The notes under the pieces are model-generated. The model ran no database searches. It was not told where the DNA came from and saw only the letters and a list, made by a program, of their open reading frames with translations. This document shows positions 1-21,038 of a stretch of DNA of 64,000 bases, one piece after another. Position 1 is the stretch's first letter. Each line of letters starts with the position of its first letter. A program made the translations under genes and the position numbers. The stretch is taken from positions 1,364,001 through 1,428,000 of the forward strand of contig CP075493.1 of assembly GCA_021613535.1 (NCBI GenBank). Direction: 5' to 3'. Source of the stretch: Adineta vaga (Eukaryota; Animalia; Rotifera).

Positions 1-2141
1 CTTCCGATATATGCGAGCTTCAACGAAAGACGGCGAAATGAATTTGTAAACACAAAGAGTGTTTCATGTTTACATAGTGACCCGTACTTATATTCCCTTC
101 CTATTCATTATCATTCTGAGAATTACAAGAGTATGATTAATTCGCGAGTGGTAAAGTCGTTCTGTCTTGAGTTTACACATATTTCTTTTTGAATATATTC
201 ATCATCGGTGTCGATGAAACCGAGTATACTAGATCTATCGAAATTTTTCATGCTATGCATTCAAATAATTACACATGATAATGAACATTTAGTTGTTGAA
301 TGTACATCCAAAATAGTTTTTTTTTATCTAATATGACGATTTTGTTTATTTGAGAAATCAATGTGAACTGCCTTTCTGAATTCATCGATTGTGATGAACA
401 TTGTTCTAAAATATACCATCGACGCATGTATCATGACATTTGTTTCATTGAACCAATGGCATATTGATCACTGACTTTTTAACTAGGAATATATTGATGA
501 AGTATATAATTGTCATATTTACACTGAATGGAAATTTTCTTTCATATAATATTGGTATTTTAACAAAGATGGGATTATATCTGACATGAATTAACAAATA
601 ATATCTAACATTAGTCGAAAAGAGATAAAAAAATTAAGGATAAACTTTGTTTGGTTTGATTTAATCAATTTTGATTGCAATGCTCTAAATATATTTGTAA
701 AAAATATCGAATTCATATAATAGTTACCTATAACCTTTGAACAATTTCACAGCATCCAAACAACGAGAATTCAAACGAGTGTTGCATCATAACCAAGATA
801 AAAATGAAGACATTATCAAACGTAATTCGAAAGACGAGCTTGTGAATTTTAAAATAATCGATTGTGAACGGATATTATCCACTGTCATAATTAGGTAAAT
901 AACTATTGAATCCATACAAAAAATTCAATAAACTCTTTTTCTTTATTTTTTAATACTTGATGTTTCCAGATAAAAACTTTCTCTTCCATCAGAAAACATA
1001 TACATTTTGACCAAAATTATAGAGTATATGATTGTTCGTTCTTTTTTCAATGTTTTAAATTCTAATGAAAACAAATAATAATGTTGATGTCTTGCGTAGA
1101 AGAAGTTTTTCTTTTCTACTTTCATGGCAAAAGAGATAAAAACTTCCATATTTAGACATGCGAAATGAGAACAAAATTAAAAATGAACATTCCGTAAATC
1201 TCATCTATATTTCTACTCATTTTGTTTCTTATTTATAGACAAGCAGTAATTTATTAGAGCAACTCTATTTTCATTTAATTACCATAAGTGTTCTAATCTT
1301 TTTTGATCATTGTCTTTGAAGGTAATATTTGTTTAAAGCATCATATGATATATGCTTCTCATTATCGTCTTTCGATATATCCCTATTATTTTATTCTTCT
1401 ATAGAATAATGTTGTCTATTGATTTATGTAAATCTAGGTTTACAATAGAAAATCTTCTGGAATACTCGACTGTTTTTTTCGAAACCTATTTAATTCTCAT
1501 TTGATCGTATCTTACGTTAATATTACGAGAAACTATGTTTTATTTCAGATTCTCTCAACATTAAAAATCTATTGTGGAACACTTTCATATTATTTTCCTT
1601 CGACACAATTTGAGATCAATTGCCTCTATACTTTCCGAAATATACACAATACATTATGACTTTCTCATATAGCTGAATGGAATATTTACTCGTTGATAAT
1701 TCAATATATTGTAATCAATTGATTTGTTTATTATCGTGTGTTCCATAATTTCGTTATTTATCAGCAAATTTATTACGTCAATATGATCCTACACAACCAA
1801 ATTTATATGACATGATGTTGATTAATTTGACATATGCATCTTTTAAATTCAAATCCGAAGCAGTTGATATTTTTGAACAATTTTTTATCAATCATTTTCC
1901 TTCTATTGAAATTTTATTCATCGCATCAGATATTAGATGCATGAAAGCCAACTCTGAAAATAAAAAAGGAGTTTTCCAGAACCTTTTTGGGGGTTCGGCC
2001 CGCTGGTAAAATTCAGAACCCACAAAAAGGTTCTGGTTCATAGAGGGTTCTGTTAAAACCTAACAGAACTCTTCATTATTCTATACAAAAATAAGGTTTA
2101 GTCTGACATAAAAGGTGTGTTAAATGGTTTTTCAGAAAATT

Positions 2142-2397
2142 ATTTTCTCTTTATTTCTATATTGATTTATACACATATTCCAGTGTTGCAAGTGCGTCTG
2201 TTTATGTTAAGCTCTCAAATAGACCGAAAAAGTGAATTAAGCGACAGTCGAATCACGCTTTTTTCTTGCTGTCGATTGGCTCAATTCAGCCCTAACCTAA
2301 TTCACTTTCTCAGTCTGTTTTTGACCTTGTAATATAAACAGACACACTTGCAGTACTTGAATACGTGTACAAATCAACCTAGATAGAAAAAGAAAAT
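2142..2397. repeat. Long imperfect inverted repeat (~100 bp arms) inside the TIR element
   Basis: TTGATTTATACACATATTCCAGTGTTGCAAGTGCGTCTGTTTATGTTA (from 2162) matches the reverse complement of 2330-2377, TTGATTTGTACACGTATTCAAGTACTGCAAGTGTGTCTGTTTATATTA. Pairing continues inward (AAAGTGAATTA/TAATTCACTTT). Confidence 0.85.
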
Positions 2398-3747
2398 CAT
2401 TCTACTTTTGTTTCTAATATCCCACTTACCATTTCTCTGCAATATAGATCGGTCTAAATATAAAAGAAGAAAATATTTAGTTTTCTATATAAAATATAAC
2501 TCACATTTCGTTAGACTTCGATCTGAATCTAAATGAAAATAGAAAATATTCAATCTAAAATTCAAAATATCACTCAACTTTAGTCAGATATGGCTATGAA
2601 CCGAAATGATAACAATAAATATTTAACATATTGTTTTGAAAATAACTCATTTTTACCCACATATCTATACAAACCTAAATGATAATAGAGAATGTTTCAT
2701 TTCGTATTTAAAATATTACTTACTCTTAATCAGATATCGATATGTACCTATACAACAATAAGAAATATTTCATATCATATTTCAAATACAACTCACCTTT
2801 ACTCACACATCAATATGAACCTAAATGATAACACAATATTTAGTTTTTCATTTTAAATATAATAACATAAACATTCTCGCTAAAAGCTATGACCTTCTCA
2901 ATATCTGCTGCTATCAGGGACTGATATTTAGTTTCGAAAGCTGTCCGAATAGAAAGTGGGATTGAACAAGTCGTATTGAATATATCTCTTGATAGCTTCT
3001 GAAAGCCTTGAAATCTGTGGATGAAATTCGATGTAGATTTCGATAAAATTCTAAGAATCTGAGTACTGCTTAAACCAGAAACAAAAGTTGGGTGTAGCAA
3101 TTAAAAGAATTTTTTTCGCAAACTTCAATCACAAAATGTTTTTGGTAAAAAGTCACCATTTGGGTCACTTATCATCTTTCATAAGTTTCATACGGGACCC
3201 ATGCTTTGAAGTTAAGTTTTCGAGTATTATAGAATCCTCAGCCCGTTCCTGTCTACTAGTCTCATTATATAAAGATATCTTCTATGCTCAAGGGTATGCA
3301 AATACCCCTACATACTATCAGTTGATGACTGCGTGATATCTCTACATAATCGAATAGAGGAACCGCTGAAAAAGATCATTTTATTTGTAAAGAATATTTT
3401 CAAAAGATTAAGCTCGGTGAAATGATAAACTATTTAATAGTTCTTTAGTTCATTTCATCAGAGTTCATGGACTTGAGCTGATCAATTCCTACCCTCTATT
3501 GTTGACATAACATATAAGATAGTTTGAGCTATATTAGAGTCGTTCTCTATTAACTTGTAACTGGCCTGAACATAATTTTGTTACATGTAAGTAATAAGAG
3601 AAAAACCTCTCTCAGATTTGGAGGACTGAAAAATTGCTTGGAATAATCATATACTGATAGTGGACTCTCACCATCGTCGATGCAAAACATTAAGTTGTTC
3701 AGTTCATACCTAAGATCGTTATCGACAACTTGAAATGGCCAAAGCAT
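2374..3747 (-). pseudogene. Decayed cargo gene of the TIR element: large disrupted 5' region plus six 24-nt microexons
   Basis: ORF pieces 3550-3747 and 2840-3100. Then 24-nt units at 2797-2820, 2724-2747, 2651-2674, 2578-2601, 2505-2528 and 2430-2453, bounded by AG acceptors and GTRAG donors (three sites mutated) with 49-51 nt introns. Last exon GT-TGA at 2378-2374. Confidence 0.6.
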
Positions 3748-4595
3748 TTCCGTTTTTTGTTATGACAAAACTCAAAGAGAAAAGAAAGTTATTAAATTGT
3801 TGTTGACTTGCATGAACAAACGAACGTATATACATTTTTTGAGTGTGTGACTCTCTTCTTCAGTTGAGGAAACTTACGATACTCCAACATTCACTGAGGC
3901 AGCTATATCAGTTTGCGGATTTTAGAGAAGAAACTTTACATTTAGTAACGTCAAAGGAAAAAATCTCTATGATTCAATATTATCAGACCGAACCCTTTCA
4001 AACTGAGTATTTTTGGGCAGAACCCTTTTGGTTCAAAATAAATAAAACAGAACTTTTTAGGGTTCGAGATTTAATAGGCAGAACCTTTTCAGTTTCTTGC
4101 AAGCCTGTTCATAAGCTTACATGGTTTCGGATTGGTACACAGAACTTTTTAAAGTTCTGCAGTTGTACTACCGAACCAACTGGATTCAGTTTCGTCTCAC
4201 GAAGGAGTTTTCAAGGTTCAGTAGAAAAATAACTAAACCTTCTGTAGTTTAAGGGATGATTGACAGAACTCTTCATAGTTTAGAATTATCGAACAAAACC
4301 CTTTGTAGTTCATAATTGTTGTCCATAACCTTTCTTGGTTTCTCATATGTCATACAGAACTTTTTCTTGTTCTGGAGATGTTGCAGAACCGAAAAAGGTT
4401 TTGGAACACTCCTTTTCTTCTTTCAGAGGATAGATAAAAACAATTAATATCATTATATTTATCAAATTTACGTATTTTTAATGTTCGACTAGTACCGATC
4501 GGTCCTCAGAAAGAGAATATCTAAATAGAGGATTTTGTTCGGTTTTCGATGCTGTATCTTTTAGTACATTAAACGAATAGTTTCATAAAGCTCTT

Positions 4596-4858
4596 CCCAG
4601 GTCGACAAATCCGATATTGGATCCGGTAGGGCCTTATAGGATCCAACGTTCCGACAAAATCCTATCGGATTCCGTCAGTAGAATTTCTGTCGGAAGCTGC
4701 AAATTTTATGAGGGTTCCTTTTAGCTATATTTTATTGCGGTCTTATGGCAACCTGTCGGATCCATCGAAATCGGATAGAATATTGTCGGATCATCGGATT
4801 CCGATAGAATCTGGCATGGGATCCGATCGGATTCGAGTATCCGATTAGTCGACCTGGG
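4596..4858. mobile_element. MITE, 263 bp, CCCAG...CTGGG termini, 2-bp TT target duplication (CMC/EnSpm-type ends)
   Basis: TIRs CCCAGGTCGACAAATCCGATA and CCCAGGTCGACTAATCGGATA (reverse complement of right end). Flanked by TT on both sides. Internal repeated ATCCGA/TCGGAT motifs; GC-rich relative to flanks. Confidence 0.85.
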
Positions 4859-4867
4859 TTAGAATCT

Positions 4868-5117
4868 TGAGGATGGGTGTGGGTGAGGGTGTTGGTACGC
4901 CAAGAGCAAAATGAGGGCACTTTGGACTAGTTTGTAACACTGGACACACGAAAAGCCTTCTCAGCGTGAGAGACACCGATGTACGACAGTCAGCGAAGCA
5001 TTTACAGCATATTACTTAAAAGCACAGTTACAATAGTCGACGCTACCGTACGTTAGCATACTTGCAGAATTTATTAGTTTAAAACTCGAATCGATTTAAC
5101 GATTTCTACACTACTCA
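4868..5117 (-). mobile_element. Interspersed repeat copy 1; candidate 3' end (pLTR) of an Athena/Terminon Penelope-like retroelement
   Basis: Begins on + with TGAGGA-TGGG-TGTGGG-TGAGGG-TGTTGG, then ~230 bp homologous to 10856-11149 and, inverted, to 18291-18465 (shared core ACACTGGACACACGAAAAGC). Repeat status is seen directly; the class is inferred from the telomeric hexamers. Confidence 0.6.
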
Positions 5118-5918
5118 TTCATGGGGGAAAAATTACTGAAATTCATATTCAAGCGAATAATGTTCGCGAAGCCAAGAACAGAAGTATTCAAAGAGCAAAA
5201 AATAAAATAAAAAGATTAAGTTTATCGATAACGTAAGAATAAAGCAATAAACAATTTCATTAATTATTATTACTTTTCTTAGATTTATTTCCCATCCTCC
5301 AACATATTAAAAGCAATTAAAATGTATTCGAATGAACATTGATCATTTAACAAAAAAAAATAATTGTAATTATTTCTTTTAAATCAATATATTTTCTTTA
5401 TTAACGCTACATCTACTAGAATAAAAGTATCATAATGATGCTTATTTTCATCTGAAATCTATAACTATTTTAATATTTGAAAAGATATCATTGATAATAA
5501 TCAATTGCAAAAGGATTTTAATTATAAATAAAGATTAATTCAAATATTCGAATTAATTAAGTAGTATTATTTGTACACATTTTCTTTTAAGCACTAACCA
5601 AATTCCTCAGAAAAGGTACAAAATCATTTGCAACTATAAATTCTGTTTCCACCAAATTTCATGTAGAAAATCATATTTATTAAATGGTTTATAAGTCTTA
5701 TATTTATTGTGTTTTAAAAATGAAATAAAATAATTTCCAAAATAGAAATCATCCTATCACATAAGAACAATATAGAAAAAATAATCTTAATGATCATTGT
5801 TTGTTGGTGAGAATTGTTTATCAGCTATTTATTCTAATATTGATATTACACATGAGATGAAATGACACGAACGTTTATCATGAGTGAAAGAAATACATGA
5901 AAATATTCGGAATATATG

Positions 5919-6720
5919 TCAGTCAAAACTATAAAAAAGTCCACAACCATCATTTTCTTCGCAAACATACGGTTCTACATTTGATGATAAATCAAGAAGA
6001 CGTTTTTTTAATTGTTTGATGAATAACCAATGTTTCTTGTATGTTGAATACATATCATACTTATGTGTATTATACATATGTCGAAAAAAGAAAGAGAAAT
6101 TCGATAACATTGATGCTGTTTCTGCAATGATTTGACAACTTGTATCATCTGGAGGAATACGCATATCATATAACAGTATACGGAAAGACTTCAATAACGG
6201 TAAAGTTGAGAGTGCACGTAAAGTAGTCCAATCTACAGGTGCAAAACAAAGACATTCATAATGAAGAATAATTTGAACAGATCGAATGTTTAATGAAAAT
6301 AAATTACAATGTAATGAATCCAAACTATCAATAAGATTAAGATGAGAAACATTCGGTAAATCTATCGATGTTTCTCTATTACATCGAAATAAATGAAGTT
6401 CGACAATGTTATTTGAAGACATTATTTGAAAGAAAAAGTAGTAGATGATGGAAGATTATCTGACATATGTAGTTCAATAATTTGCGAAGAATAACTTTTA
6501 ATTATGGAAGTGGCTATATGCATCCAGCGACATATAATAGACTGGTCAGCATAAATCAAGCATTATAATAAAATTAGTATAAAGAAATCAACTTAATTTA
6601 AATAAGGAACAACTATTTTGCAAAAAATTTCTAGTATAATCTGTCCAAAAAGTTCGTTTGTGTGAATGTTTTGTTTTATAAATAATTCGAGAACGCAAAC
6701 AACTAGAGATCTGCAGGTTC
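5919..6720 (-). pseudogene. C-terminal remnant of a bdelloid F-box-associated/unknown family gene
   Basis: 167-aa open 3' part (5919-6422). Upstream coding-like text (SQIIELHMSDNLPSSTTFSF) is broken by frameshifts and no start is recognisable. Confidence 0.45.
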
Positions 6721-6830
6721 CATCAAATGAAAGAGGAAATTATGATATCTTTTTCCATGATATTGTGTAAGATAAAGTCCTTTTGAAATTTATCATTGCC
6801 GAAAAACATGAAAAAAGAATGCATCTAAGT

Positions 6831-7049
6831 GACTTGTAATCTATGATTCAGGATATAATGCGCTTTCTCACCTTTCACAACATTTTCATTGGAATATTCA
6901 CTTGTTACAATAAAAAATGTGAAAATGTGATGAAATATCAGTCAAAATCCCTATTATTTATGTATCCACATACGCGATTTTGTTTGGTCAACCTTACGTT
7001 GCAATAAGAGAAGCATTTGTATTGTATCCTGAATCATAGATTTCAAATC
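6831..7049. mobile_element. MITE-like element (~220 bp) with ~29-bp TIRs
   Basis: GACTTGTAATCTATGATTCAGGATATAAT at 6831 versus the reverse complement of 7021-7049, GATTTGAAATCTATGATTCAGGATACAAT. No TSD identified. Confidence 0.6.
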
Positions 7050-7376
7050 TGTCTCTCTATTTATCTACACATTTGACCATAATTCTTATTTCTGTAAAGA
7101 CAATATTCAAATATACAATTTCATCAAGCAGTTTTGCAGATCAAGATTTATGTTTAGCAGTATAAATTCGATAATTGATTTCAATCATATTATTCTGATA
7201 AAATTAATCGTTGAAAGTTTTTGTTCATATTTTACATTTCAATAAACTCATTGCGAATGTGTATCTTCTCGTACCGAGAACAGGATTGTTTTATTAAATC
7301 GAAGTAAAACACAAAGTTTATTATTTACATATTTCCAAAAAAAAGAATATTAATAAAGAACATGACTAACAACAGT

Positions 7377-9767
7377 TCATTGTTGATTATCAACCAAAAT
7401 ATTCAAAGCATTGACAATCTAAAAAAATTTGAATAAATAGAAAAGTAATTTATTTATATTAAAAAACTTTTCTCTTACTTCTTTTTTTGTCATCGAATTT
7501 ATATCAACATTTCGATCAAACTTTTCTATTGCATTCATCCATGCTGATGAACTCATTCTCACATTCAGATTTAATTCATTTGAATAAACTACGATTTCAT
7601 TTTCATTCGTTATCTACAACAACAAATGAGTAGAAAATAGATCAAATCGAAATGAATCAAAGCTTCTTACTGAGTAATCATCTGTAACATAACTAAGAAT
7701 GGTTCCTAATCGTCGATGTAACATTGTATCATCAATCTTTCGAACTTTCGCTAAAACGAAAGAAGAAAAATAGAATAAAAACAAGTATAATCGAAAAAAA
7801 TAAACCGATTTCATGAAGTGGTTGTTCAGATAATCTTTGACGTTTTGGTCGACGACATTGATTTTCAATTTGAGCAAGAATCTAAACATTCAGATATTTA
7901 TGAAAAATGATTTAATAAAAGAAATTACTTCTTCATCAACAATGTCAAGTTTTTCGTCATCATTATCGAGTTTTTCGTCTGATACTGATTTTGATTTTGA
8001 TTCAGCAAAGAAACTTGTTTGTATAGATTCATCAATACTTGTTAATGATGTTTTACTAATTGTTGCTAATGATGAATGTATTGATGGCATTGATTTTGAT
8101 TTCACAAGAAATAATTCTTGTTTGAGACGAGCATTTTCTTCACGTAATTCATCGATTTCATGTCTTAAATGTGGTGTTTTAATTCGTGGAACATTTGTTA
8201 TTGTTGCAGCAAGACCAGCATATCTTAATGTATTGATTGTTTCATCAATAACTGTTGATGATGGACTAATTGTTGCTAACATATATGTTTTTGCATCACC
8301 ACCAAGACTATTTTTGAGAAGATATGTTAAACTTGAATCTCGATATGGTATATGATGTTGTTGACGAGATAAAGCATCAATTACATTTCGAAGAGTTGAT
8401 AATGATTGATTGATATGAACACTTTCCTAAGAAAAGAAGAATTCATATTGAAATAACGCAAACATTTCGAAATAACACTTACTGCAAATCGATCATTTTT
8501 TGCTTTTGATCCATGAAATTGTTGTGATTTTTCACTACCAGCTAAATCAACAAAATTTAAACGTACAGCTTGTTCTTCTAATTCATCTAATGCTTGTTGT
8601 TTAACATTTTTTTTAGTATTTGAATTTGACAACATTGAACTTTTGTTATTCGTAGTAGAATTTGATTCAAATAAAAGACGTTTTGTTGCTGATTGTGGCA
8701 CATCATTTCGACTGATTTTAATAGTAAATATTGCATGGGATCTTGATGATCGTTGATTAGCATTGGTTGATGCGACTGAACGTTGTTGATTACCTAAATT
8801 TAATACATTTTGAAAATCTTCTTTTGTTTTCACTTGAATATATTTCAAATCGGGAACATATGGACCAAGTATGGGATGTTCACGAATTTCCAATGCTCGT
8901 GTCGAATTACAAGCAAATTTGTTTAGGATATGTGTACGAGCAGTTTTCGAAAAGGACGAAGATTTCGTTGTTGATTGTTGTTCATTTGAAGTTGAAGGTG
9001 TTGCAAGAAGATCTGTTACTTTTTCATTATAAATTTCAAGAAAACTTAATTCAAATTTTAAATGATGATTAGCGTTCATTGTAATCAAATGATCAATACT
9101 TAATGAAAGAATTCCTTCTTCACTAGATGAACCAAAAATTGAATGAGATTTTCCTATCAAAAACATAATATTCAATCATTTTGATTTTTACTTTTTTTTC
9201 TGAAAATATGAATACCTGAAGCTGTCTGTCCATAAGCTAAGACAGTTGTGTTGTAACCTTGTAAAGAAGCAAGTACAGCCGATCGAATCATTCCATCATA
9301 AACATCTTTCTATAGAAAAAAAAGAACGAATAGATCTTCCACTGATATTGTCATATATAATTACATTATTAGCTAATGAATCAAAACAATTTGTAAATTT
9401 AAATATTTGTGGTCGACCATTTTGTGTACAAATAACATTAGTTTCGAAGATTTGTACTGCTGGTGTATCATCAATCGAAGATTCTCTAGGAAAAGAAAAG
9501 AAACATGGACAATAATCCTTTAACTTTCATTCGAATTCTCACCGATCAAGAAATGGACGCAGTCGAATACCAGTGATAATTGGATCACCTTTAATTCCTT
9601 TCTTTCCAGGTGTGCGAGGTGATGATGTAGAGAGAATACTTGATGAACATGTTAAATGATCATCTATAGAAAAATTAATAGCTGAGAATAAGAAAGTCGT
9701 TTATGAAAATATGCGACATACGAGTAGAAAGAGTAGATTTTCTTAATTGATTTAAACGACGAGCCAT
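7377..9767 (-). CDS. N-terminal-motor kinesin (kinesin-3-like motor), 10 exons
   Basis: Spliced frame [10 protein letters not shown]... through GIRLRP, P-loop [24 protein letters not shown], switch I NQRSSRSH, switch [35 protein letters not shown] and a short coiled coil, ending LVDNQQ-TGA at 7377. All introns GT-AG and phase-consistent. Confidence 0.92.
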
Positions 9768-10855
9768 GGATGACTACTACTACTACTACTACTTGTACAG
9801 AGAAACGAGGAAGAAAACAGATAAAGATCGACGATGATGTTCGTTTGTTTTGTTTCGTTTCATATATATGTATGTGTACGTGTGATTCCGAAAAGACAAG
9901 ATAGATGTCGGTTATCATCAAGTATGCATATATCTGAAACGTACATGTATGTACATTAGATTTAAGGAAAATCAAATTCTATTTCAAGAATGATTTTCGA
10001 ATAGAAGAAAAAACCATATAACTTTACTTAAATACCAAAAGTGTAGAGGGAAAAGTTAAAAAAAGACCGATCATATAATTTAATATCCAAAAGTCGCGAT
10101 GTTCTTGATATGAGAAACATTGTAGATTTTCTTTTCTTTTCTTTTTCGTTATCTGTTGAAAATTTAGATAAATATAGAATGGATAATCGTTTCATTCATA
10201 TAACTATACCTATATAGAACAATGCAGAATGGTTAATAAGAAAAACAACCGACATTATTATTCATTTTAAGCATGATTTTTCATTAAATAATATATTTCA
10301 ATCCATTTTAGATATTTTGATATTTAGATATGTATTTCTTCAAAACATGGTGCAACTAAATCATTCTAGCTCATCATCTTGAAGATATAGAATCAAGGAA
10401 CAAACCATAAAATTATTTGCATATTGACTTCCTACAGACTCAAGTTCATGGAGGTTATGGACTACCTTTAAACATAACATTAACTCATTATTTGTTTTTC
10501 CTTCTAGGTATTTCGTTGTATTCGTTTGACTGCAGAAGATACAACATTATACGAGTACCTCATGAAACAAAGCTGCTTTTTTTTCTTATCTAAAATTCTG
10601 TCTTGTGTGCATTTTACTTTATAATCATACAAACTTGAACATTTTAGATATAATTAAAAAGTTAATTATCATATCGTTTCAGTCGTATAGATGACACAAC
10701 AAAACGTGTAAGTTTATCATAAGAAGCTTTATAACAGAGGAGAAAAAATACGCAACTTCTAATGTCTTTCTTTTACACAAACACGAGTATATCTACATGT
10801 TTTGTTTTGTTTCCATTTACATGTGCATGCTCAGTTGACTATCCTGTCATTGAAA

Positions 10856-11149
10856 TGTGGGTGAGGGTGTTGGAAGGCAAAGAGCAAAGTGAGATTGCCT
10901 TGGACCCTTCTGTCACACTGGACACACGAAAAGCGTTCTCAGCGGGAAAGACATCGATTGATAACGGTCTGCAAAGCATTTACACCATATAACTTAAATG
11001 CATATTTAAAATAGTCGACGATACCATATGTTAGGATACTTATGGAATTCAATACTTTAAAATTCGAGTACTCGAATTCTAAACTGAAACTTCAGAAGTT
11101 GAAGAAGAAGTTTATTACTCGAATCGAATTAACGATTTCTATACTACTC
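10856..11149 (-). mobile_element. Interspersed repeat copy 2; candidate Athena/Terminon 3' end
   Basis: Starts TGTGGG-TGAGGG-TGTTGG on +. Highly similar to the inverted copy at 18291-18465 and shares the distal segment ACTCGAATCGA-TTAACGATTTCTA-ACTACTC with copy 1. Confidence 0.6.
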
Positions 11150-12171
11150 TCTAGAGAGTGAGTTTGGATGAATTGATTGTGAACCATCCACAGGCAATAT
11201 ATTAAAATATTTGAAATATCAATTAAGAAAAAAGAGATCAATTTCATATCTCTATAGACAATGATGAAGCAGAACATAACCCATATACAACAACATGGTT
11301 ATCATTCATCGACTCAGTAGAAGAAAGATTAACAGATAAAATATGCATGCAGATATGTATACATGTATGATACCATCTTGTATCTCTGTTCTATGTATCC
11401 ATCCAAGAGACAAAATGTAGATATAGAAATAAAGTAGATCTCAAAAAGCTCAAAACAGTTATATAGTCTCTGAAGCAATATCAGAACACTTTTAACTTCA
11501 AATACATTAGCAACATAAACTTACATATAAGAATATGAAACGACTTCTCAACCACATTATGCTATGTACAATGTGCATAATATGGAGTGCAGGTGTATCT
11601 CTTTTCGATCACGAGAAAACTTGCAAAGTACAAATTGATAGCCACCAGGCTGAAATAAAGAACATGTTAGAGAAAAAAAGCAATTTAATTTGAACAATTG
11701 GTCATACGTATCTGTTGTCGTAATAATCTGCCTTCTTGAACTATTGATATTTATTGCATGTTGTCATATTCGCACTAAATACTAGAGGATGGTGAAAAAA
11801 TTGCAGCATCTAAATGTAAATGATCCTACTCAAACGTCTCAAGTAGACGATAAAGGACCGTTTATTCTGTGTACAAAAGATAGAAACAAACAACATGCAA
11901 GGGAAATCGAGCAAGATGTTTAGGTATCTTTTCATCTTGTCTCTTTTTCTTGCTCTTTTACTATTTTTTTATTAATTCCATTCTTCTATCTACATAGTGC
12001 TTATATTCTTGTAGCAATGGTTGTAACAATTTTCTCTCTCTATCTTAACTCTCATTCTTCAAATGCATATAATCATGTATGTCACTAGCTACACAAAATA
12101 CTCCAGAGTCGTAAACGCTTCCGAGAAAAACGACTATTAAGTAAAAGCATAATAAAAAAATAATATACCAA

Positions 12172-13089
12172 GTGTTCGTCGACCAAGTATTGTCATTCGT
12201 GAGCATCAATTAGCAAAATATCCAGTTAATTATGATCCAGCACCTCAAATTATTCGTAAAACAGTAGATCCTAATCATCAAACTATTGTTTATAAGCAAC
12301 AAATTGCTGTTCGATATTTGTGTCCACCCACACCTCCACCACCAGCTCCATTAATCATTCGAGAAGTTCGAGGTCCTGAACCATCACCACTACCACCGAG
12401 TTAGATGACGAATTCGTTTTTCATGAATCTGATAATTAAATCTCTATTTTAGTTATTATTCGACAACGGCCTCCAGCACCACCTACACCACCACCTATTA
12501 TTATTCGAGAACGACCACCAACTCCACCAGCTTATACTACACCAAAGGTAATAAATCAAAAGATATTTCTAGATTTAAAAATTAGCAAGACATATTCATG
12601 AAAACTCATAGATCATTTATAAACAAGTCTCGTCTGCTCAACAACAAGCAACACGTCGTGTTATTATCGAACGTTTACCGCCGATGCCTGCTAAACCACC
12701 TGATATTATTGTTGAACGTTGGCTTCCATACAAACAACAAAAACGTCAGGTTATTTATGAAAAAGCCATGACAAACAATGATAATTCAATATCTAATTTC
12801 GATGAACAACTTCCAAATAATGTTATTATTCAATATGCAAATCCATCGGTTCGAATAGAAAAGCAAATGCGTTCATTAGGTATAGTACGATGTGATCCAT
12901 ATGGAAAAACTGCAAGTTCAACTGCATCTTCTCCTAACTTTGATGGTAAAAATACTTTATTTCATTGTTTGTTTTGCTTTTGAGATTCATTTTCAATATT
13001 TGTAGAACCGATCTATCATAATTTCTCATCTTCAAACTATGAACATCTTCATCCAATGTCAAAATAAAATATTCACTTTTTTTTTCATC
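12172..13089 (+). pseudogene. 5'-truncated inverted duplicate of the proline-rich gene at 19876-21038
   Basis: Reverse complement of 19853-20777, introns included. About 14 substitutions and one 5-nt intronic indel by eye. Lacks exon 1 and the exon 2 acceptor; stop at 13065-13067. Confidence 0.85.
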
Positions 13090-13500
13090 ATGGTAAACTC
13101 TATGAATTCATATCATTTTCAGACTGATTTGTTCAAAAAAACTGAATCATAATAATGACGACTGTATTCAAGTAGATCCATTTATTATGGTTTATACTAT
13201 CAGAACAAACAAAACAGAAAGCGAAGAAAGAAGAGAGTAATAACTGTTTTTGTAAAACACTCACACAGAAAAAAGACGAGAAAATACTATGTAGAACAAG
13301 TAGAGATTATAATAATAATAATAATAATAATAGTATAAAAAAAGGAAAACTGATTGTTGAAAGAATGAGTTCAAGTATGATTTTGTTTTCATATAAATAA
13401 ATATATACAAAGAATACATATGTAAAGTTAATACGCGGAAAAACGAAACTTTCTTTTAGATAGAATAATTGATATACAGAAGAAGAGGAAGAAAAAAAAA

Positions 13501-16122
13501 TTACGTGATTGTACAACATGAACGAATACAAGATGAACACGGTGTACAATAACAACAGCAACAAACTGAACAAGATGCCGATTGCTGAATGAAAGGTGGA
13601 GGTGTTCGAGGAGCAAAATAAGCATGAATATTTAAATCAGGATAACGTATCTAAATCATCAATATTCAATTCAATTGAAATTGCAATAGCGAAAATACCT
13701 GAATTTTTTTTACGGCATTTTTCGTTATCTGTTGACAATCAAATATATCTAGACGTCGAAGATTTTGACAAGCAAGTAGATGATCAATTGATGTATCGGT
13801 GATCGTTGGACAATTATCCAGCTCAAGTATTCGAAGATTTTCTTGTGCACTAACACTCGAACCAATATAACGAACACCTTCATCAGTTATCTGTTCACAT
13901 CGAGAAAGAGTCTAGGAAGAGAAAAATTACACAATTCAAATTAATTCTAATAATCAAATCGATCATTTACTAGTATACGAATATTAGGGCAATTATCAGC
14001 TAAATGTCGTAATGTTTCATCAGTAATCTAGAAAATGTTTTGAAAAGAAAACTAAGATTCTAAATCGAATCTTAAATTCTTACAGCTGTACAATCTTCCA
14101 GATCGATTCGTTGCAATAAATGACATCCCTACAAAGTGTACTTTTATACGCAAAACAAATTCAATCAATACAAAATCTTACTTGAGCCATTGCTAAAAAT
14201 CCTGCATCACTAAATTGTGAACATAAAGTTGCATCTAGTTTTCTTAAAGATAAACAAAAAAAACAAATTCTTTTTTCCTATACTCATTTGCATCTCATAC
14301 TTCAATTGATGACAATATTTGCCCAATGCTATCAATGTACTATCTGTTAAACTTGAACAATTAGCGATAATTAATGTTTCAAGTAATGAGCAATATTGTG
14401 TTAAAGTAACAAGTCCATCATCAGTCAAGGACTAAAAATTAAAAAGAACAAAGTAAAATTATTAAACGACTTTTTCAACTTACAGAACATCGATTCAGAT
14501 CAAGAAATAATAAATTTGAACAATTTTTTCCCAAATACATAGCCGCATTATTTGTCATCTAAATAATTTTCTTATCAAAACTCTTTTTTTCAAAAAACAG
14601 TCTTTCCTATCATACATGTGTACATCCTTCAGCTTTAAATGTTGTTAATTTAGGACAAGATTCTGCGAGTATTCGAATACCATTCTCAGTAATATTCATA
14701 CACCATGAAATATCCCACCATTCCAAATGAGAACAATTGGAACTAAAGAAAAACACGAATAGAAAAAAAACTCATTTTCTAGGAAAAAGTATTCTACCTG
14801 ATCATTTTAACTCCTTGATCGTCAATATTTGAACATGATGAAATATTAATTGAATTTAAATATGAACAATGTTTACTCAAATAAAGTAAAGTACTATAAA
14901 AAAATACAATATTGATTTTTCATTTCGAAAGTTATTTAGTTACGTATTAGTTAATTTGTCACAATGTTTGATAATTAATCGTTCTAAATTTGGACAATGA
15001 CTTGCGAGAATTCTAATTAAAAAGAAAGACATATTCGGAATTCTTTTCTTTAGGAAATACGAGTCATTTACCGCATATTATTATCTGTGATAAATTTACA
15101 ATTTTCAATATTTAATTTTTTCAAAAATTTTCCACAACGTTCACTTAAATTTTCTAGAACAGTTCCCTAAAACGAAACGAAAAAAGAAATAACAAGAGTA
15201 TAGAAGGAAATCTCTTGTTTATACATCAATATCACGTTGAAAGTTTTTTAAATTAATACTTTGCCAATTGGAACCATCTAATGCCAATGTATTCCAATAC
15301 TATGAAAACAGAAATAGAAAGAATAGATTTACAATCGAAATCTATACTTTGGACACTTGTGCACATCGACATAGAGATTGATAATCGAGAAAAGAGAAGA
15401 TTCTAAAAATGAAAATATACAAATATAAAATTGATTCTATTATTATATATATATGAAATGTTTTCATAGGACTAGTACTTGAAATGATAGGAAAACGATT
15501 TCCGGTTTCGTTCTTATATATAACTTTTATTAAGTTATTCAGTCCTTATGATAGATATTTGTTTTCTGGAAGTAAACTTTTATTATTATTTGATAAATAT
15601 TCTTTTCAATTAGATTTTTGATGTAGAAGAGAAGTAGTGAATACATTTAATACAGACTGAAAATAATTTACAAGAAATGCATCTCATATTACACATCTGT
15701 TTCTCAATGGAATTGCATTTATATTTTTCTTTTATTCGAATAATTGATTATTTTTACCTTAAAACTAATTCTTTTGGTAATTTTTTATCGAGTAAACAAA
15801 AATTTTCATCTGGAATTGTTTCTAGTTGTGTATTCGTTTTTGCTGAATTATTGATTAAATCAAATAAAAGTCGTCGTGAACGTTGTGCTGATGAAATATT
15901 TAATAAAGGATGTAATGAATCATCATTAGGTTGACTTAAAATTCCTGTTGTAGATGAATCATTTGAACTATCATTTGTTGATTTATTAATATGTCCATTT
16001 GCTGTTGCTAATGATGATGAAGTATGACTTGATGAATCTGTTGGAGATCCAAGATTTAAATGATTATTATCTGAAGAATTTTGACCGACAGTACGTTTGA
16101 AAAATGTACGTATAGCAGCCAT
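13501..16122 (-). CDS. FBXL20: F-box/LRR-repeat protein 20/2
   Basis: F-box LLDKKLPKELVLRIFSFLDYQSLCRCAQVSK-YWNTLALDGSNWQ, then multiple Cys-containing LRR exons, LELDNCPTITD, and C-terminal HAYFAPRTPP...SCCTIT* (CaaX-like). FBXL2 versus FBXL20 is not resolvable by eye. Confidence 0.9.
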
Positions 16123-17234
16123 TGAAAATAAACGAATGATAATGACTTAAAACGAACAGTTAAAAATAATTTTCTTTAAACATGAATTTACCTCCTCATG
16201 AACAAGATCGAATGTGATTAGAATGTAATCAAACTTCGTAAATAATCACATTGTTTTATTCGGAATATATTCGATGCATTGCTCACGCGCTTCAAGCGCG
16301 AGCAGATGGTTTAAATAAGATTTTAGTCTAAAATATTAGAAATATTTCATGGTATTGAAAAAACGAAATTAATCTTCTTCTCAATAACGCATCTCATTTA
16401 TTTTAATTATGAGAAAAATCACATGCCTATTTATTTTTTTCTCTATTCTATTCTATTCTATTCCCATCAGTCAGGTATTTGTTCTGTTCTGTTTTGATTA
16501 TATTGTTTACAATTGTCAAAAATGTGTATTTTATCGTTGCAATTTAAGTTTTTTAAAATTCTTTTCGAAGAAAAAAATCGCAATTTTTTTCGCTTTTGTT
16601 AAGTGATCTTTATCAAATGTACAGATGGCGCTAGTGAAAGAGTAAACTATGGATTGGTATGTTCAATCATTGACACAAAACTAAACAGACAGTTGAGTTA
16701 TGACGGAAGTCAGCGTGATCATATCTGATTAGAAAATATATTATAGAATGAGAATCTTTTACAAATATGATTATCAAATGTTATTAAGATATGAACCGTC
16801 TATTATGATTTTATGTCAAGATAAATTTGAGTTCATATATATATAATGACTTCGTATTTGGTTGGAAACAAAGAAAAGCAATCTGCATCGTGTTTTCCTC
16901 TTAGAAAATATGATGTTGTTTCAAGTCTCTAGATACTCTCAAAATATTAATTTTCATTGTCTTATCGTGTACAAGATGGAACTCTAAAAAAATGAAAGAA
17001 TTCTACTTGAATACAGATTGAATAGTTTAATAGTTTGGGTGCAAACATGAATTGAATTAGCACATACGTGTGAATAATGTAAGATGAATGAGACCGCTTC
17101 AGATATGTGTAATTTTCATATATCTAAAGAAATCATTTAAAATTCGTTCGACTGTATTGAAAATAACACAATGGATTCTGATACTCTAAACTAGCGTTAA
17201 GACGATGAAGATCACCTTCTATATATTGTTTTTC

Positions 17235-17905
17235 CTGAATAAATTAAGAAAATCCGCTCTTTCTACTCATATGTCACAGTTTCGCATTATCATCTCTGGA
17301 TTTTTGTATAGATGAACAATTGATATGTTCAGCAAGTATTCTTTCTTCATCATCATCTCGAACAACTGGAAAGAAAGGCATCAAAGGTGATCCAATCGTT
17401 ACTGGAATTCGACTTCGTCCATTCTTCGAACGGTAACAATTTAAAGTTAAGCAAAGATTATTTAGATTTATTCTACTATCTCTAGAGAATCTTCAATTGA
17501 TGATATACCAGCTGTTCAAATATTCGAGACAAATGTTATTTGCACGCAAAATGGTCGACCACAAATATTTAAATTTACAAATTGTTTTGATTCATTAGCT
17601 AATAATGTAATTATATATGACAATATCAGCGGAAGGTCTATTCGTTCTTTTTTTCCTATAGAAAGATGTTTATGATGGAATGATTCGATCGGCTGTACTT
17701 GCTTCTTTACAAGGTTACAACACAACTGTCTTAGCTTATGGTCAAACAGCATCAGGTGATTTATATTTTGAAGAAATCCAAACGGTTTACTATTATTATT
17801 TTTTCAAAAGGAAAATCTCATTCAATCTTGAGTTGATCAAATGTAAAGAAGGAACTCTTTCATTAAGTGTCGATTGTTCGACAATGAATGCCAGTGATAA
17901 CTAAA
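17235..17905 (+). pseudogene. Inverted partial paralog of the kinesin 5' region (exons 1-5 start)
   Basis: Homologous to ~9060-9755. Start codon lost, first donor GT>AT (CTC|ATATG), frameshifts after GKSHS. Central 195 bp (17547-17741) are nearly identical to 9230-9424. Confidence 0.88.
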
Positions 17906-18290
17906 ATTCTCTGAAAGAATTTGTAAAAAGTACAGGTCATATGATCACAAAAAAACGAATTATACTTGTTATCCTGGATGCTTTTATTCAGTAACAATCA
18001 TAGTTCAATATAAATAACATAGCATGTAGAAGAAAAACGAAACATATAGAATGTCGATAGAAAAGGTAAGTGTATCCATGTAGCGTTATTCTCCGTGAAC
18101 GCCATCTAAATGAAAAATGAATTCGCAACACAAATCGAGATTTAATAGCTGTTGTTTAATCTAATATGAATTTTATTAACTTACTATTATCACGAATGCG
18201 ACGGAGATCCTCTAATTCAGCATTCTTGAGGCATATCTCATGCATTTTCATGGTAAGCAAAGCTACATGTCGAAATGACCGATTGTCAGC

Positions 18291-18465
18291 AACATATGGT
18301 ATCGTCGACTATTTTAAATGTGCATTTAAGTTATATGGTGTAAATGCTTTGCATACCGTTATCAATCGGTGTCGTTCCCACTGAGAACGCTTTTCGTGTG
18401 TCCAGTGTGACAGAGGGGTCCAAGGCAATCTCACTTTGCTCTTTACCTTCCAACACCCACCCTCA
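18291..18465 (+). mobile_element. Interspersed repeat copy 3 (inverted relative to copies 1 and 2); candidate Athena/Terminon 3' end
   Basis: Ends CCAACA-CCCA-CCCTCA (reverse complement TGAGGG-TGGG-TGTTGG). Adjacent antisense spliced mini-ORF 18251-18086: MKMHEICLKNAELEDLRRIRDN|NGVHGE*. Confidence 0.6.
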
Positions 18466-19875
18466 AGATGAGAATGAATTATTTGTCAAGCTTGATGAAA
18501 ATGAAGAAAACAAATTACAAAAAGTCTTTGATAAGCTGTACTGTAGTTTGAATAAATCAAGGTATGTAATATCAATCTACACATACGTATAGGAAGGACA
18601 AAGTATCGTTTCTTTATAAACTAGAAATTTCTAAACCTGTCTTTTATAGTCAATCGGTAGAAGCGGAATTACATCGTACATTGTACCCGCAAGAACGTGT
18701 CCGTATCGTATATGATGGCGGGAAGGTATTCTTGAATCTTCATCTTCCAAATTCAACAATTTTCCTATGTTTTTTTTTTCAGTTTTACGACGCGCAATTA
18801 ATACGTTTTGCCACAGAAACTCAAAACTGGTAATGAAATCCAAGCACAAACGATATGCGCCAATGTGGACTACTATTTCGCGTATTTTTACGATAGACCA
18901 GTGATTTTTTTAATAAATGTTCTTACTAGAAAAAGTGTTACATTCATTATTACTAAAAATATAATTTGACAAGCGGAATAAGAATGTCATGATCTTAGTA
19001 GTAACATTGAAGTAGAAATTATTTAATCAATTGTTCTCGAGGAAAATAGTGTGTTGAATAATGTAAAAGTATACAAAAGTGCAATTACATGCTGACGTAT
19101 CACATGTGAAAAAAAGAAAACAAACAAATACATCAGTCCTATCTTATCTTATAATGAATGTTGTGAATAAAGTATTGGCTTTTTGACTTTAGAAGCATGA
19201 ATTAGGTCTAATGTTACGTATAAAGATCAAATGAAGTTGTTAAAGAAAATATTACTAGTATTTGCTGGTTATTTTTTAACATGAAAGTATTTAAAACTGG
19301 TACAAATTGAAAAATTTTCTCAGAATCAAAGACAACTTTTTTCACCAAACTTGTTTTCTGAGAATATCTCTGAATGGCAAACTAAAACAAATACCAGAAA
19401 AGTCGAAATCGACTATGATGAATATAAATAGTATGAAAGATTGTACGAATATCATAGTTAATAAAATTTATTATTCTGTGTAATTTTTTTTGTTTTATCA
19501 GAAATCACGAAAACATTGCCGTTCTTTTTCTTACACAACAAATCGCTATTGTATGTTATAACAGCATAGACATACAACTGTTTATTAGTACTAATAATCT
19601 ACGTGTAAAAGTATATATTGAAAACAGGATTAATGGTTTTGTGATAGTTTTATACTTACATTTCTGGTTCGCAAAGAAAAATTTTTGCTGAGATATCTTT
19701 ATGAATATCGGAAAATAAATCCGGATAGAGATTTCTAGTATCGATATTATAACGGAAAGAAAATGAATTTTATTAAACATGAATAACAAATATGCATGAC
19801 AATGTTATGTTTCATATGAAATTCAGTTTGGTAAAAGCAGTAAATGATTGATTGATGAAAAAAAAAGTGAATATT

Positions 19876-21038
19876 TTATTTTGACATTGGATGAAGATGT
19901 TCATAGTTTGAAGATGAGAAATTATGATAGATCGGTTCTACAAATATTGAAAATGAATCTCAAAAGCAAAACAAACAATGAAATAAAGTATTTTTACCAT
20001 CAAAGTTAGGAGAAGATGCAGTTGAACTTGCAGTTTTTCCATATGGATCACATCGTACTATACCTAATGAACGCATTTGCTTTTCTATTCGAACAGATGG
20101 ATTTGCATATTGAATAATAACATTATTTGGAAGTTGTTCATCGAAATTAGATATTGAATTATCATTGTTTGTCATGGCTTTTTCATAAATAACTTGACGT
20201 TTTTGTTGTTTGTATGGAAGCCAACGTTCAACTATAATATCAGGTGGTTTAGCAGGCATCGGCGGTAAACGTTCAATAATAACGCGGCGTGTTGTTTGTT
20301 GTTGAGCAGACGAGACTTGTTTATAAATGATCTATGAGTTTTCATGAATATGTCTTGCTAATTTTTAAATCTAGAAATATCTTTTGATTTATTACCTTTG
20401 GTGTAGTATAAGCTGGTGGAGTTGGTGGTCGTTCTCGAATAATAATAGGTGGTGGTGTAGGTGGTGCTGGAGGCCGTTGTCGAATAATAACTAAAATAGA
20501 GATTTGATTATCAGATTCTTGAAAAACGAATTCTTCATCTAATCTAACTCGGTGGTAGTGGTGATGGTTCACGACCTCGAACTTCTCGAATGATTAATGG
20601 AGCTGGTGGTGGTGGTGTGGGTGGACACAAATATCGAACAGCAATTTGTTGTTTATAAACAATAGTTTGATGATTAGGATCTACTGTTTTACGAATAATT
20701 TGAGGTGCTGGATCATAATTAACTGGATATTGTGCTAATTGATGCTCACGAATGACAATACTTGGTCGACGAACACGTGGAATATGTTCTTCTTCATCTT
20801 GATCTATACATCGAAAATGACTTCCATCATATCTTTACTTCTCATTGAAATTATCTCATATGTTACCTGCTGATGGTTCTCGATCAATTTTCGTTCGTTG
20901 ATCTGCAAGATTTTCATATGTCTTCGTTCCCGAGACTGGTTTCAGCATCATTGATTGACTCTTCTGAACATAAAAACTCGCATCATCACCTGCTTCTTCT
21001 TCGTTCAACATTTGTTTTCGGTCAACCATTTCGTTCAT
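19876..21038 (-). CDS. Proline-rich protein of the rotifer-expanded DPxPQIIR / PPTPPPP-PLIIRE / PPDIIVERWLPY family, 5 exons
   Basis: Spliced open frame MNEMVDRK...YDPAPQIIRK...YKQQIAVRYLCPPTPPPPAPLIIREVR...KPPDIIVERWLPY...HPMSK*, with GT-AG introns. Confidence 0.85.

Follow-up and report, generated by a model that had tools for sequence, protein, structure and literature searches.

Bdelloid rotifers have a published telomeric repeat of the TGTGGG type (PMC7943196, PMC8494291), and the 3' end of their Terminon retroelements consists of a hammerhead directly followed by (ACACCC)n or (TCACCC)n, with the Terminons being attached to G-rich overhangs (PMC6431247, PMC8557442). In lines of Adineta vaga, telomeric repeats and Athena fragments have been found at deletion breakpoints, and a neotelomere hypothesis was put forward (PMC13564844, 2026). 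The Penelope elements of the same species produce target-site duplications (TSDs) of 8-10 bp and show inverted pseudo-long terminal repeats (pLTRs), unrelated sequence caught between the pLTRs, and solo pLTRs that lack TSDs (PMC3846280). The general concept that retroelement or telomeric patches are added to broken ends is already published. Here we describe three copies of a short hexamer-led unit in a 64-kb stretch of the A. vaga genome (contig 1:1,364,001-1,428,000; hereafter, the window) and compare this unit with the known systems. On balance, it appears somewhat probable that the unit is a non-autonomous retroelement that was copied in trans by a reverse transcriptase (RT) of the Athena type, starting from a DNA 3' end and independently of an endonuclease, and was then end-joined.

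The three copies (Table 1) had been proposed in an earlier, sequence-only reading of the window, and both direct reading and alignment bear them out: a 19-mer from the core of the unit has 3 exact matches in the window as against 0 in 100 shuffles. Each copy starts, as that reading held, with two to four degenerate TGTGGG/TGAGGG hexamers, namely TGAGGA-TGGG-TGTGGG-TGAGGG in copy 1, TGTGGG-TGAGGG in copy 2 and TGAGGG-TGGG in copy 3; when both strands of the 64 kb were scanned for hexamer runs, only these three sites were found. The assignment of such hexamers to the bdelloid telomeric type agrees with the published repeats (PMC7943196, PMC8494291). In each window copy, the hexamers are followed by the conserved GTGTTGGAAGGCAAAGAGC…. 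Copy 1 belongs to a different subfamily, being 80% identical to copy 2 and 88.5% identical to copies on contig 5 and contig 4. Copy 2 is closest to copy 3 and vice versa, if marginally (95.8% identity); the two have no private substitutions in common, and each differs by ~2% from the family consensus.

Searches of the whole genome (100.8 Mb, six contigs) yielded ~17 copies, ~15 of them with the hexamer-proximal 178 bp and ~12 full-length. Because the full-length copies share one and the same terminal nucleotide (…CGAATTAACGATTTCTACACTACTC), while the hexamer end varies between ~1.5 and 5 hexamers, the unit is a discrete non-coding element of ~295 bp, with the fixed far end …CTACACTACTC, rather than a series of variable truncations of a long template; it contains no open reading frame (ORF). 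The expectation of a shared fixed hexamer end and of variable distal truncation is thereby turned around, since the fixed end is the distal one and, in the window, copies 1 and 2 reach it and copy 3 alone is shortened. In the entire genome, only two shortened copies were found, copy 3 (ending at position 177 of the unit) and a copy on contig 6 (locus L015, ending at position 118), and both have lost the end distal to the hexamers and are joined to unrelated DNA rather than to hexamers. All copies of the subfamily open with hexamers and agree in the hexamer block that adjoins the body; six copies open with the lead-in ATCTTGAGGG. As the sequence-only reading had claimed, TSDs are absent: none was seen by eye at ~15 copies. 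The copies occur singly, and no head-to-tail chains of the unit were seen. The setting was previously described as a gene-rich interior, which overstates the case, given that 13 of the 17 copies are no farther than 1.7 Mb from a chromosome end; the copies occupy a subtelomeric zone, in which they are clustered: a stretch of 14 kb holds the three copies described here, and one of 200 kb on contig 6 holds four.

Two further arrangements of the unit deserve mention. At locus L006 (contig 2:9,478,300), hexamers and the first ~20 nt of the unit are followed by hexamers again and then by the full unit; this doubled start looks like an abortive start with a restart, or else like the seed of 40-bp arrays. 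Loci L010 (contig 5:180,965) and L011 (contig 4:15,218,580) carry one unit copy each with identical flanks, and represent a segmental duplication between subtelomeres, L010 lying near the left end of its contig and L011 near the right end. Several other classes of elements were considered and rejected. A short interspersed element (transcribed by RNA polymerase III and tRNA-derived) would have a tRNA-like head with A and B boxes, which the unit does not possess; ARAGORN found nothing in 4700-18700, and Rfam reported no tRNA there. A Helitron, which would have a 5' TC, a 3' CTRR with a subterminal hairpin, and A and T at the insertion site, is at odds with the distal end …CTACACTACTC, after which the next base of the flank is inconsistently T, and with the variable hexamer end; the reading of the unit as a plain tandem repeat was rejected as well. 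When metagenome contigs were scanned twice by exact pattern for the element in other organisms, there were 0 matches, and no hexamer junctions were found on the related rotifer contigs.

The junction at copy 1 can be read at the level of single bases. To the left of it lies a dispersed repeat with an F-box/LRR gene. In the pattern output, nine other copies of this repeat run beyond the equivalent of position 4867 with TAAATAAATCTCGAT, whereas the window copy switches to TGAGGA…, and the continuation TAAATAAATCTCGAT occurs nowhere in the window. Thus, the F-box repeat is cut exactly at the hexamer junction, in line with the earlier claim that copy 1 sits where the F-box sequence is cut off. The triplet TCT is common to the repeat and the unit, with the lead-in ATCT occupying 4864-4867, so that the microhomology amounts to 3-4 nt, an overlap that would be expected if a DNA 3' end had paired with an RNA ending in …AGAU. 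A second discontinuity is found at L015 on contig 6, where the shortened unit meets another hexamer-led segment head-on, forming a convergent pair at a single site.

The telomeric tip of the unit is shared with sequences of another kind. The genome was searched for a hammerhead-type core followed, after 20-50 nt, by CCCTCAAGAT, with the reversed pattern as a control; there were 11 matches, as known from the pattern output, versus 0 in the control. The matched sequences have the form CTGATGAG…CGAAAC…(CACCCA)n CACCCTCAAGAT, that is, the geometry of Athena/Terminon. Read in reverse complement, the lead-in of the unit, ATCTTGAGGG(TGTGGG)n, exactly matches the tip …CACCCTCAAGAT of these sequences; it has the form ATCT-TGAGGG-(TGTGGG)n, in which the first hexamer is always TGAGGG and TGTGGG follows. 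From this correspondence we infer that the sense strand of the unit is the C-rich one, with the hexamer end being the 3' end of the RNA and the fixed end its 5' end; in this orientation, the sense strand of every copy has a 3' end of telomeric repeats in reverse complement, as in Athena/Terminon. The pattern of truncation, whereby the hexamers are always kept and the distal end is sometimes lost, fits this polarity; exclusive loss of the distal end would be expected if synthesis begins at the hexamers.

The start motif itself is by far more widespread than the unit. The 12-mer lead-in ATCTTGAGGGTG occurs at 581 + 571 = 1,152 genomic sites, as against 2 for the reversed control; the underlying process is therefore very common, with the unit as one template, or one product, among many. 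Of the sites listed for contig 1, the first 100 extend to 15.2 Mb, and among these, those at 0.15-1.6 Mb and from ~9 Mb onward are dense and those at 2.4-9 Mb sparse. In the fetched loci, we also noticed small head-to-head structures in which a G-rich hexamer run, 10-35 bp of filler and a C-rich run succeed one another, often with ATCT…/…AGAT lead-ins (L046:6048-6090 and 8384-8440; L029:1722-1753; L050:5883-5929 and 9296-9352; L052:4981-5040; L061:914-956); one such structure sits in the contig-4 ohnolog region of the window.

In its resemblance to Athena/Terminon (Gladyshev & Arkhipova 2007; Arkhipova et al. 2017; summarised in PMC6431247 and PMC8557442), the unit combines a reverse-complement telomeric stretch at the RNA 3' end, able to pair with G-rich or otherwise exposed 3' ends, with the lack of TSDs, a bias to subtelomeres and the terminal motif …CACCCTCAAGAT that is found in this genome. 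It differs in being ~295 nt long, in having neither an RT nor any other ORF, in having no hammerhead core beside the tip, and apparently also in that its copies are single and have a fixed 5' end, whereas Athena/Terminon copies are 5'-truncated, capped with telomeric repeats and arranged in head-to-tail chains. The hammerhead core CTGANGA…GAAA is absent from both strands of the three window copies. Rfam, applied to the window at the gathering threshold and to copy 2 at E values up to 10, returned no hammerhead and no other family, and among 30 fetched genomic loci it recognized one tRNA and nothing else; its sensitivity for the hammerheads of this genome is doubtful, inasmuch as a genome-wide scan with RF00163 gave none above the cut-off among 73 scored of ~10,000 candidates and is unusable as a positive control. 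Since neither a hammerhead core nor a neighbouring RT was found, it is the shared tip that ties the unit to Athena; the 20-30 nt adjacent to the tip show, by eye only, a weak likeness to the hammerhead-type 3' ends in a TTTGCT…TTTG motif.

The favoured mechanism can be envisaged as follows. The RNA, corresponding to the C-rich strand (5' GAGTAGTGTAG… body …CCAACACCCTCACCCACACCCTCAAGAT 3'), would be ~295 nt long and would run from 5' GAGUAGUGUAG to 3' …CCCUCAAGAU. An exposed DNA 3' end, whether at a double-strand break or at another free end, would pair by a few bases, often via ATCT or TCT, with the tip of this RNA; an RT supplied in trans, presumably of the Athena type, would copy the RNA, usually to its 5' end, and the end of the cDNA would then be joined to another DNA end without a target-site duplication. 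Endonuclease-independent insertion of LINE-1 at DNA lesions and dysfunctional telomeres, reportedly described by Morrish et al. in 2002 and 2007, resembles the proposed route in the priming from DNA 3' ends, the lack of TSDs and the accompanying deletions or rearrangements, but differs in that the enzyme belongs to another family, that there is no poly(A) and that the pairing is by a telomere-complementary tip. The work on A. vaga lines (PMC13564844) shares the idea that broken ends gain telomeric repeats or Athena-derived sequence and that scars are left behind; there, however, the signal was obtained with experimental lines and is presented in the discussion and in a supplementary figure, whereas here the reference genome itself carries the scars in fixed form, a particular short element is the template and one of the cases lies at an inversion. 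The interstitial repeats inserted by mammalian telomerase (PMC2246262) likewise comprise short telomeric runs with microhomology and a fixed non-telomeric lead-in, although the hexamers of the unit precede a mobile-element copy of 175-295 nt and the lead-in corresponds to the tip of retroelement 3' ends.

Copies 2 and 3 are associated with a rearrangement. For comparison, we used the ohnolog on contig 4 and, as an outgroup, a related rotifer contig recovered via the neighbouring kinesin gene. In the outgroup, the order is kinesin, F-box gene, segment E and downstream genes. With a for the remainder of the kinesin, b for its 5' part, c for the F-box region, e for segment E and f for the downstream genes, the arrangement in the window is a-b / junction 1 / inverted (b-c-e) / junction 2 / e-f. 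Relative to both flanks, the block at ~12138-17910 is inverted in comparison with the outgroup contig, and the ohnolog on contig 4 points to the same orientations; the core of the block is collinear with both comparators, in an orientation opposite to that of both flanks. The two unit copies, inverted with respect to each other and with their hexamers facing outward, lie in the two junction zones of the block (9753-12162 and 17909-19852), for which, the units aside, nothing equivalent exists on the outgroup contig or at the contig-4 loci. The placement of copies 2 and 3 at the outer flanks of a rearranged block, as originally proposed, thus stands with regard to their opposed orientation and the junction zones; contact with conserved flank was not borne out, both units being embedded in ~2 kb of junction DNA. 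Inverted duplicates accompany the junctions: the kinesin part b (A) and its partner A' are 80% identical, and segments E' and E are 98% identical (Table 1).

The junction DNA contains exon-like sequences that are interrupted by the units. The last piece of F1, LTILSLK (10835-10855), is severed by the hexamers of copy 2. From copy 3, two small orphan gene tails diverge, F3 with exon pieces at 18186-18290 (-) and 17990-18107 (-), and F4, which spans 18467-18831 (+) and has an AATAAA signal; a single gene head joins either tail in frame. In homology searches that used single exons, the F3 exon had no homologue among 1.84 billion representative proteins, and neither the F3 tail nor the right-flank (F4) exon had a paralogue in the genome.

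It is tempting to view copies 2 and 3 as traces of one repair event, in which, following a break in gene-bearing DNA, both chromosome-side 3' ends were extended from the same short RNA with its telomeric tip and the 7-kb fragment was religated in the inverted orientation. This would explain why a family of only ~17 copies is found at both junctions, and the convergent geometry of the two copies is that of L015 and of the small head-to-head scars. Nevertheless, we consider this version possible but doubtful, because the unequal ages of the block duplicates (80% versus 98%), set against units each ~2% from the consensus, suggest that the history of the block comprised more than one step. The alignment of copies 2 and 3 shows no chimeric pattern and neither supports nor excludes recombination between them. 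Thus, the proposal of RNA-templated patches on broken ends is sustained by the shared tip, the absence of TSDs, the polarity of distal truncation and the discontinuities at copy 1 and L015, whereas its extension to copies 2 and 3 as products of one capping event finds no support in the 80% and 98% duplicates; that these two copies capped the two chromosome-side ends of the break or breaks that inverted the 7-kb block is, accordingly, a conjecture that we put forward as part of the favoured scheme.

Table 1. Coordinates of the unit copies and of the surrounding segments in the window
Feature	Position	Strand	Description
Dispersed repeat, right part, with F-box/LRR gene	1..4867	+	Dozens of genomic copies at 90-97% identity; ends at 4867
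Unit copy 1	4868..5116	+ (G-rich strand displayed; putative RNA sense, minus)	249 bp; full-length to the fixed terminus
Kinesin 5' part (segment b)	9054..9752	-	Pfam Kinesin; inverted partial duplicate at 17238-17908, 80%
Junction DNA Z1	9753..10855	+	Carries F1, a set of exon-like pieces that read rightwards into the unit; without equivalent in the comparators
Unit copy 2	10856..11149	+	294 bp; full-length: two hexamers, body and fixed terminus (here CTATACTACTC)
Junction DNA Y1	11150..12162	+	Right part resembles upstream exons of a plus-strand gene that continues in E'
Segment E'	12163..13090	+	Inverted duplicate (98%) of 19853-20785
Inverted-block core	13091..17910	+	F-box/LRR gene region and partial kinesin duplicate A' (17238-17910)
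Junction DNA Y2	17911..18290	-	Gene tail F3: exon from the truncated end of the unit, one intron, stop, AATAAA
Unit copy 3	18291..18465	-	175 bp; hexamers right-facing; full lead-in ATCTTGAGGG at 18469-18460; stops at unit position 177
Junction DNA Z2	18466..19852	+	Gene tail F4: exon from the hexamer junction, two introns, stop at 18829-18831; genome-unique
Segment E	19853..20785	-	Partner of E'; rightwards collinear with the outgroup and contig 4

The relatives of the unit provide a different perspective. Its last ~100 bp are common to sister families that have other bodies, and hexamers open five of the six arm-less sister-family loci examined. The same distal module is shared by composite elements of 1.4-2.9 kb, which consist of an inverted 52-bp array, a hexamer run, a 40/120-bp array and a direct 52-bp array. 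Each 40-mer of the composites is made of three telomere-like hexamers and the ~22 nt that trail the hexamers in the unit, and the start of the composites, CATACATGTA…, is a variant of the distal module in the inverted orientation. The composites (L050-L055) are found on contigs 1, 2, 3 and 5, at 0.7-1.6 Mb from chromosome ends, and three of the eight have exact TSDs of 8-9 bp (ACTTAATT, TTATTGAT and TGTGAACAT); the ATCT lead-in is not encoded in them. No RT was detected within 10 kb of the composites or long relatives: the ORFs beside the latter encode a GPCR, a MYND finger, a BLIP-like protein, a weak GDSL lipase match and a 772-aa product without a Pfam match, so that the anticipated link of longer relatives to an Athena RT did not materialize. 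In the inverted distal module at the other end and in the TSDs of 8-9 bp, the composites resemble Penelope pLTR inserts in structure; neither a hammerhead nor a GIY-YIG/RT ORF was found. The window copies, like the other arm-less copies, are unlike such inserts in having no inverted arm and no TSD; the window copies also carry a telomeric tip and show truncation at the distal end. Judging from the TSD-flanked composites, relatives of the unit appear to be mobilized in a way that depends on cutting as well.

Several of these facts weigh against the retroelement scenario. There is no hammerhead core on either strand of the unit and no RT beside the related long elements; the duplicates of the block differ in age, as indicated above, while the units are each ~2% from the consensus; and the distal module forms both inverted ends of the composites, three of eight of which have exact TSDs. 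Composites with TSDs fit insertion by an endonuclease or a transposase, and the distal end of the unit could be an integration end and not the 5' end of an RNA. This leads to the view of the unit as an ordinary transposable element (a Penelope-like element with an endonuclease, a foldback element or one with terminal inverted repeats), in which the hexamers are internal, copies 2 and 3 are separate earlier insertions in opposite orientation, recombination of the two, or of other inverted repeats, flipped the block, and the association with breakpoints reflects a zone of the subtelomere rich in such elements. Besides the composites with inverted arms, whose TSDs are as in A. vaga Penelope inserts (PMC3846280), the regional clusters, the proximity of 13 of the 17 copies to chromosome ends, the lack of common private substitutions in copies 2 and 3, and the A/A' duplicates (80%), which are far older than the units, speak in its favour. 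We nonetheless regard it as unlikely: the window copies have no inverted arm or TSD, the hexamer end is never missing, whereas the distal end is missing in two copies, the ATCT lead-in has no source in the composites, and the polarity suggested by the hammerhead-type sequences is opposite to the one that such an element would require. Moreover, recombination between units leaves copy 1 and L015 unexplained.

Alternatively, telomerase might have acted first, with a short neotelomere healing the break, the lead-in being copied from nucleotides adjacent to the telomerase template, and the unit RNA subsequently annealing to the G-tail. Such a sequence of events would account for the different numbers of hexamers in different copies, for the initial hexamer that is always TGAGGG before TGTGGG takes over, and for the many sites that are no more than hexamers with a few bases of filler; it also has precedents in the interstitial telomeric repeats at repaired breaks of rodents, which start with nucleotides adjacent to the telomerase template (PMC2246262), and in the proposed formation of neotelomeres at A. 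vaga breaks (PMC13564844). It seems rather unlikely all the same, because the tip, including AAGAT, also ends the hammerhead-type sequences, so that the RNA of the element alone can template it, and because the hexamer block beside the body is conserved in the subfamily. Finally, the sequence-only reading had each copy as an aborted cDNA of an autonomous Athena/Terminon. The 3' tip in common with the hammerhead-type 3' ends and the weak by-eye resemblance next to it (TTTGCT…TTTG) point in this direction; however, a dedicated ~295-bp element whose distal end is fixed in most copies, which has no hammerhead core, whose body matches longer elements only in the ~100-bp distal module and the tip-proximal 40-bp unit, and whose long relatives have no RT within 10 kb makes this version highly improbable, and we abandon it in favour of a non-autonomous unit copied in trans.

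The surveyed loci also hold features that are unrelated to the unit copies. Within the window, 6495-7059 is a ~550-bp repeat of which at least five further copies exist (93-94% identity), every one followed by an inverted partial self-copy, an arrangement that is foldback-like or similar to that of miniature inverted-repeat transposable elements. Near one of the composites (L050:5122-5712, minus strand), a 196-aa ORF matches the bacterial beta-lactamase inhibitor protein domain (BLIP, E 4e-7) and BamE, and is a candidate for a horizontally acquired gene in a subtelomere. At L051, the 772-aa ORF (5829-8147, minus strand) without a Pfam match is located near the weak GDSL-lipase-like ORF (9362-9973, minus strand); lipases of the GDSL type also occur as accessory ORFs in Terminons.

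Taken together, what this locus adds to the published concept is a particular family of short templates that lacks both a hammerhead and an RT, junctions with microhomology at the level of single bases, and a case at an inversion that disrupts exon-like sequence. Bdelloids survive massive DNA breakage, and for their broken ends the 2026 work envisaged transient neotelomeres composed of telomeric repeats and Athena fragments. The locus is a fixed example at nucleotide resolution, with a defined template, a start motif that has microhomology to the broken end, a polarity of truncation that fits reverse transcription from the DNA end, and a disrupted repeat and exon-like sequences. The 1,152 sites of the start motif are an extensive record of the pathway, whichever enzyme it uses; they are easy to score and lend themselves to comparison with synteny breaks, islands of horizontal gene transfer and experimental breaks. 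If copies 2 and 3 did originate in one event, a dedicated small family of "capping RNA", and not merely stray fragments of Athena, would join the repair of double-strand breaks and yield structural rearrangements, and the lead-in sites would be a genome-wide record of this capping pathway.

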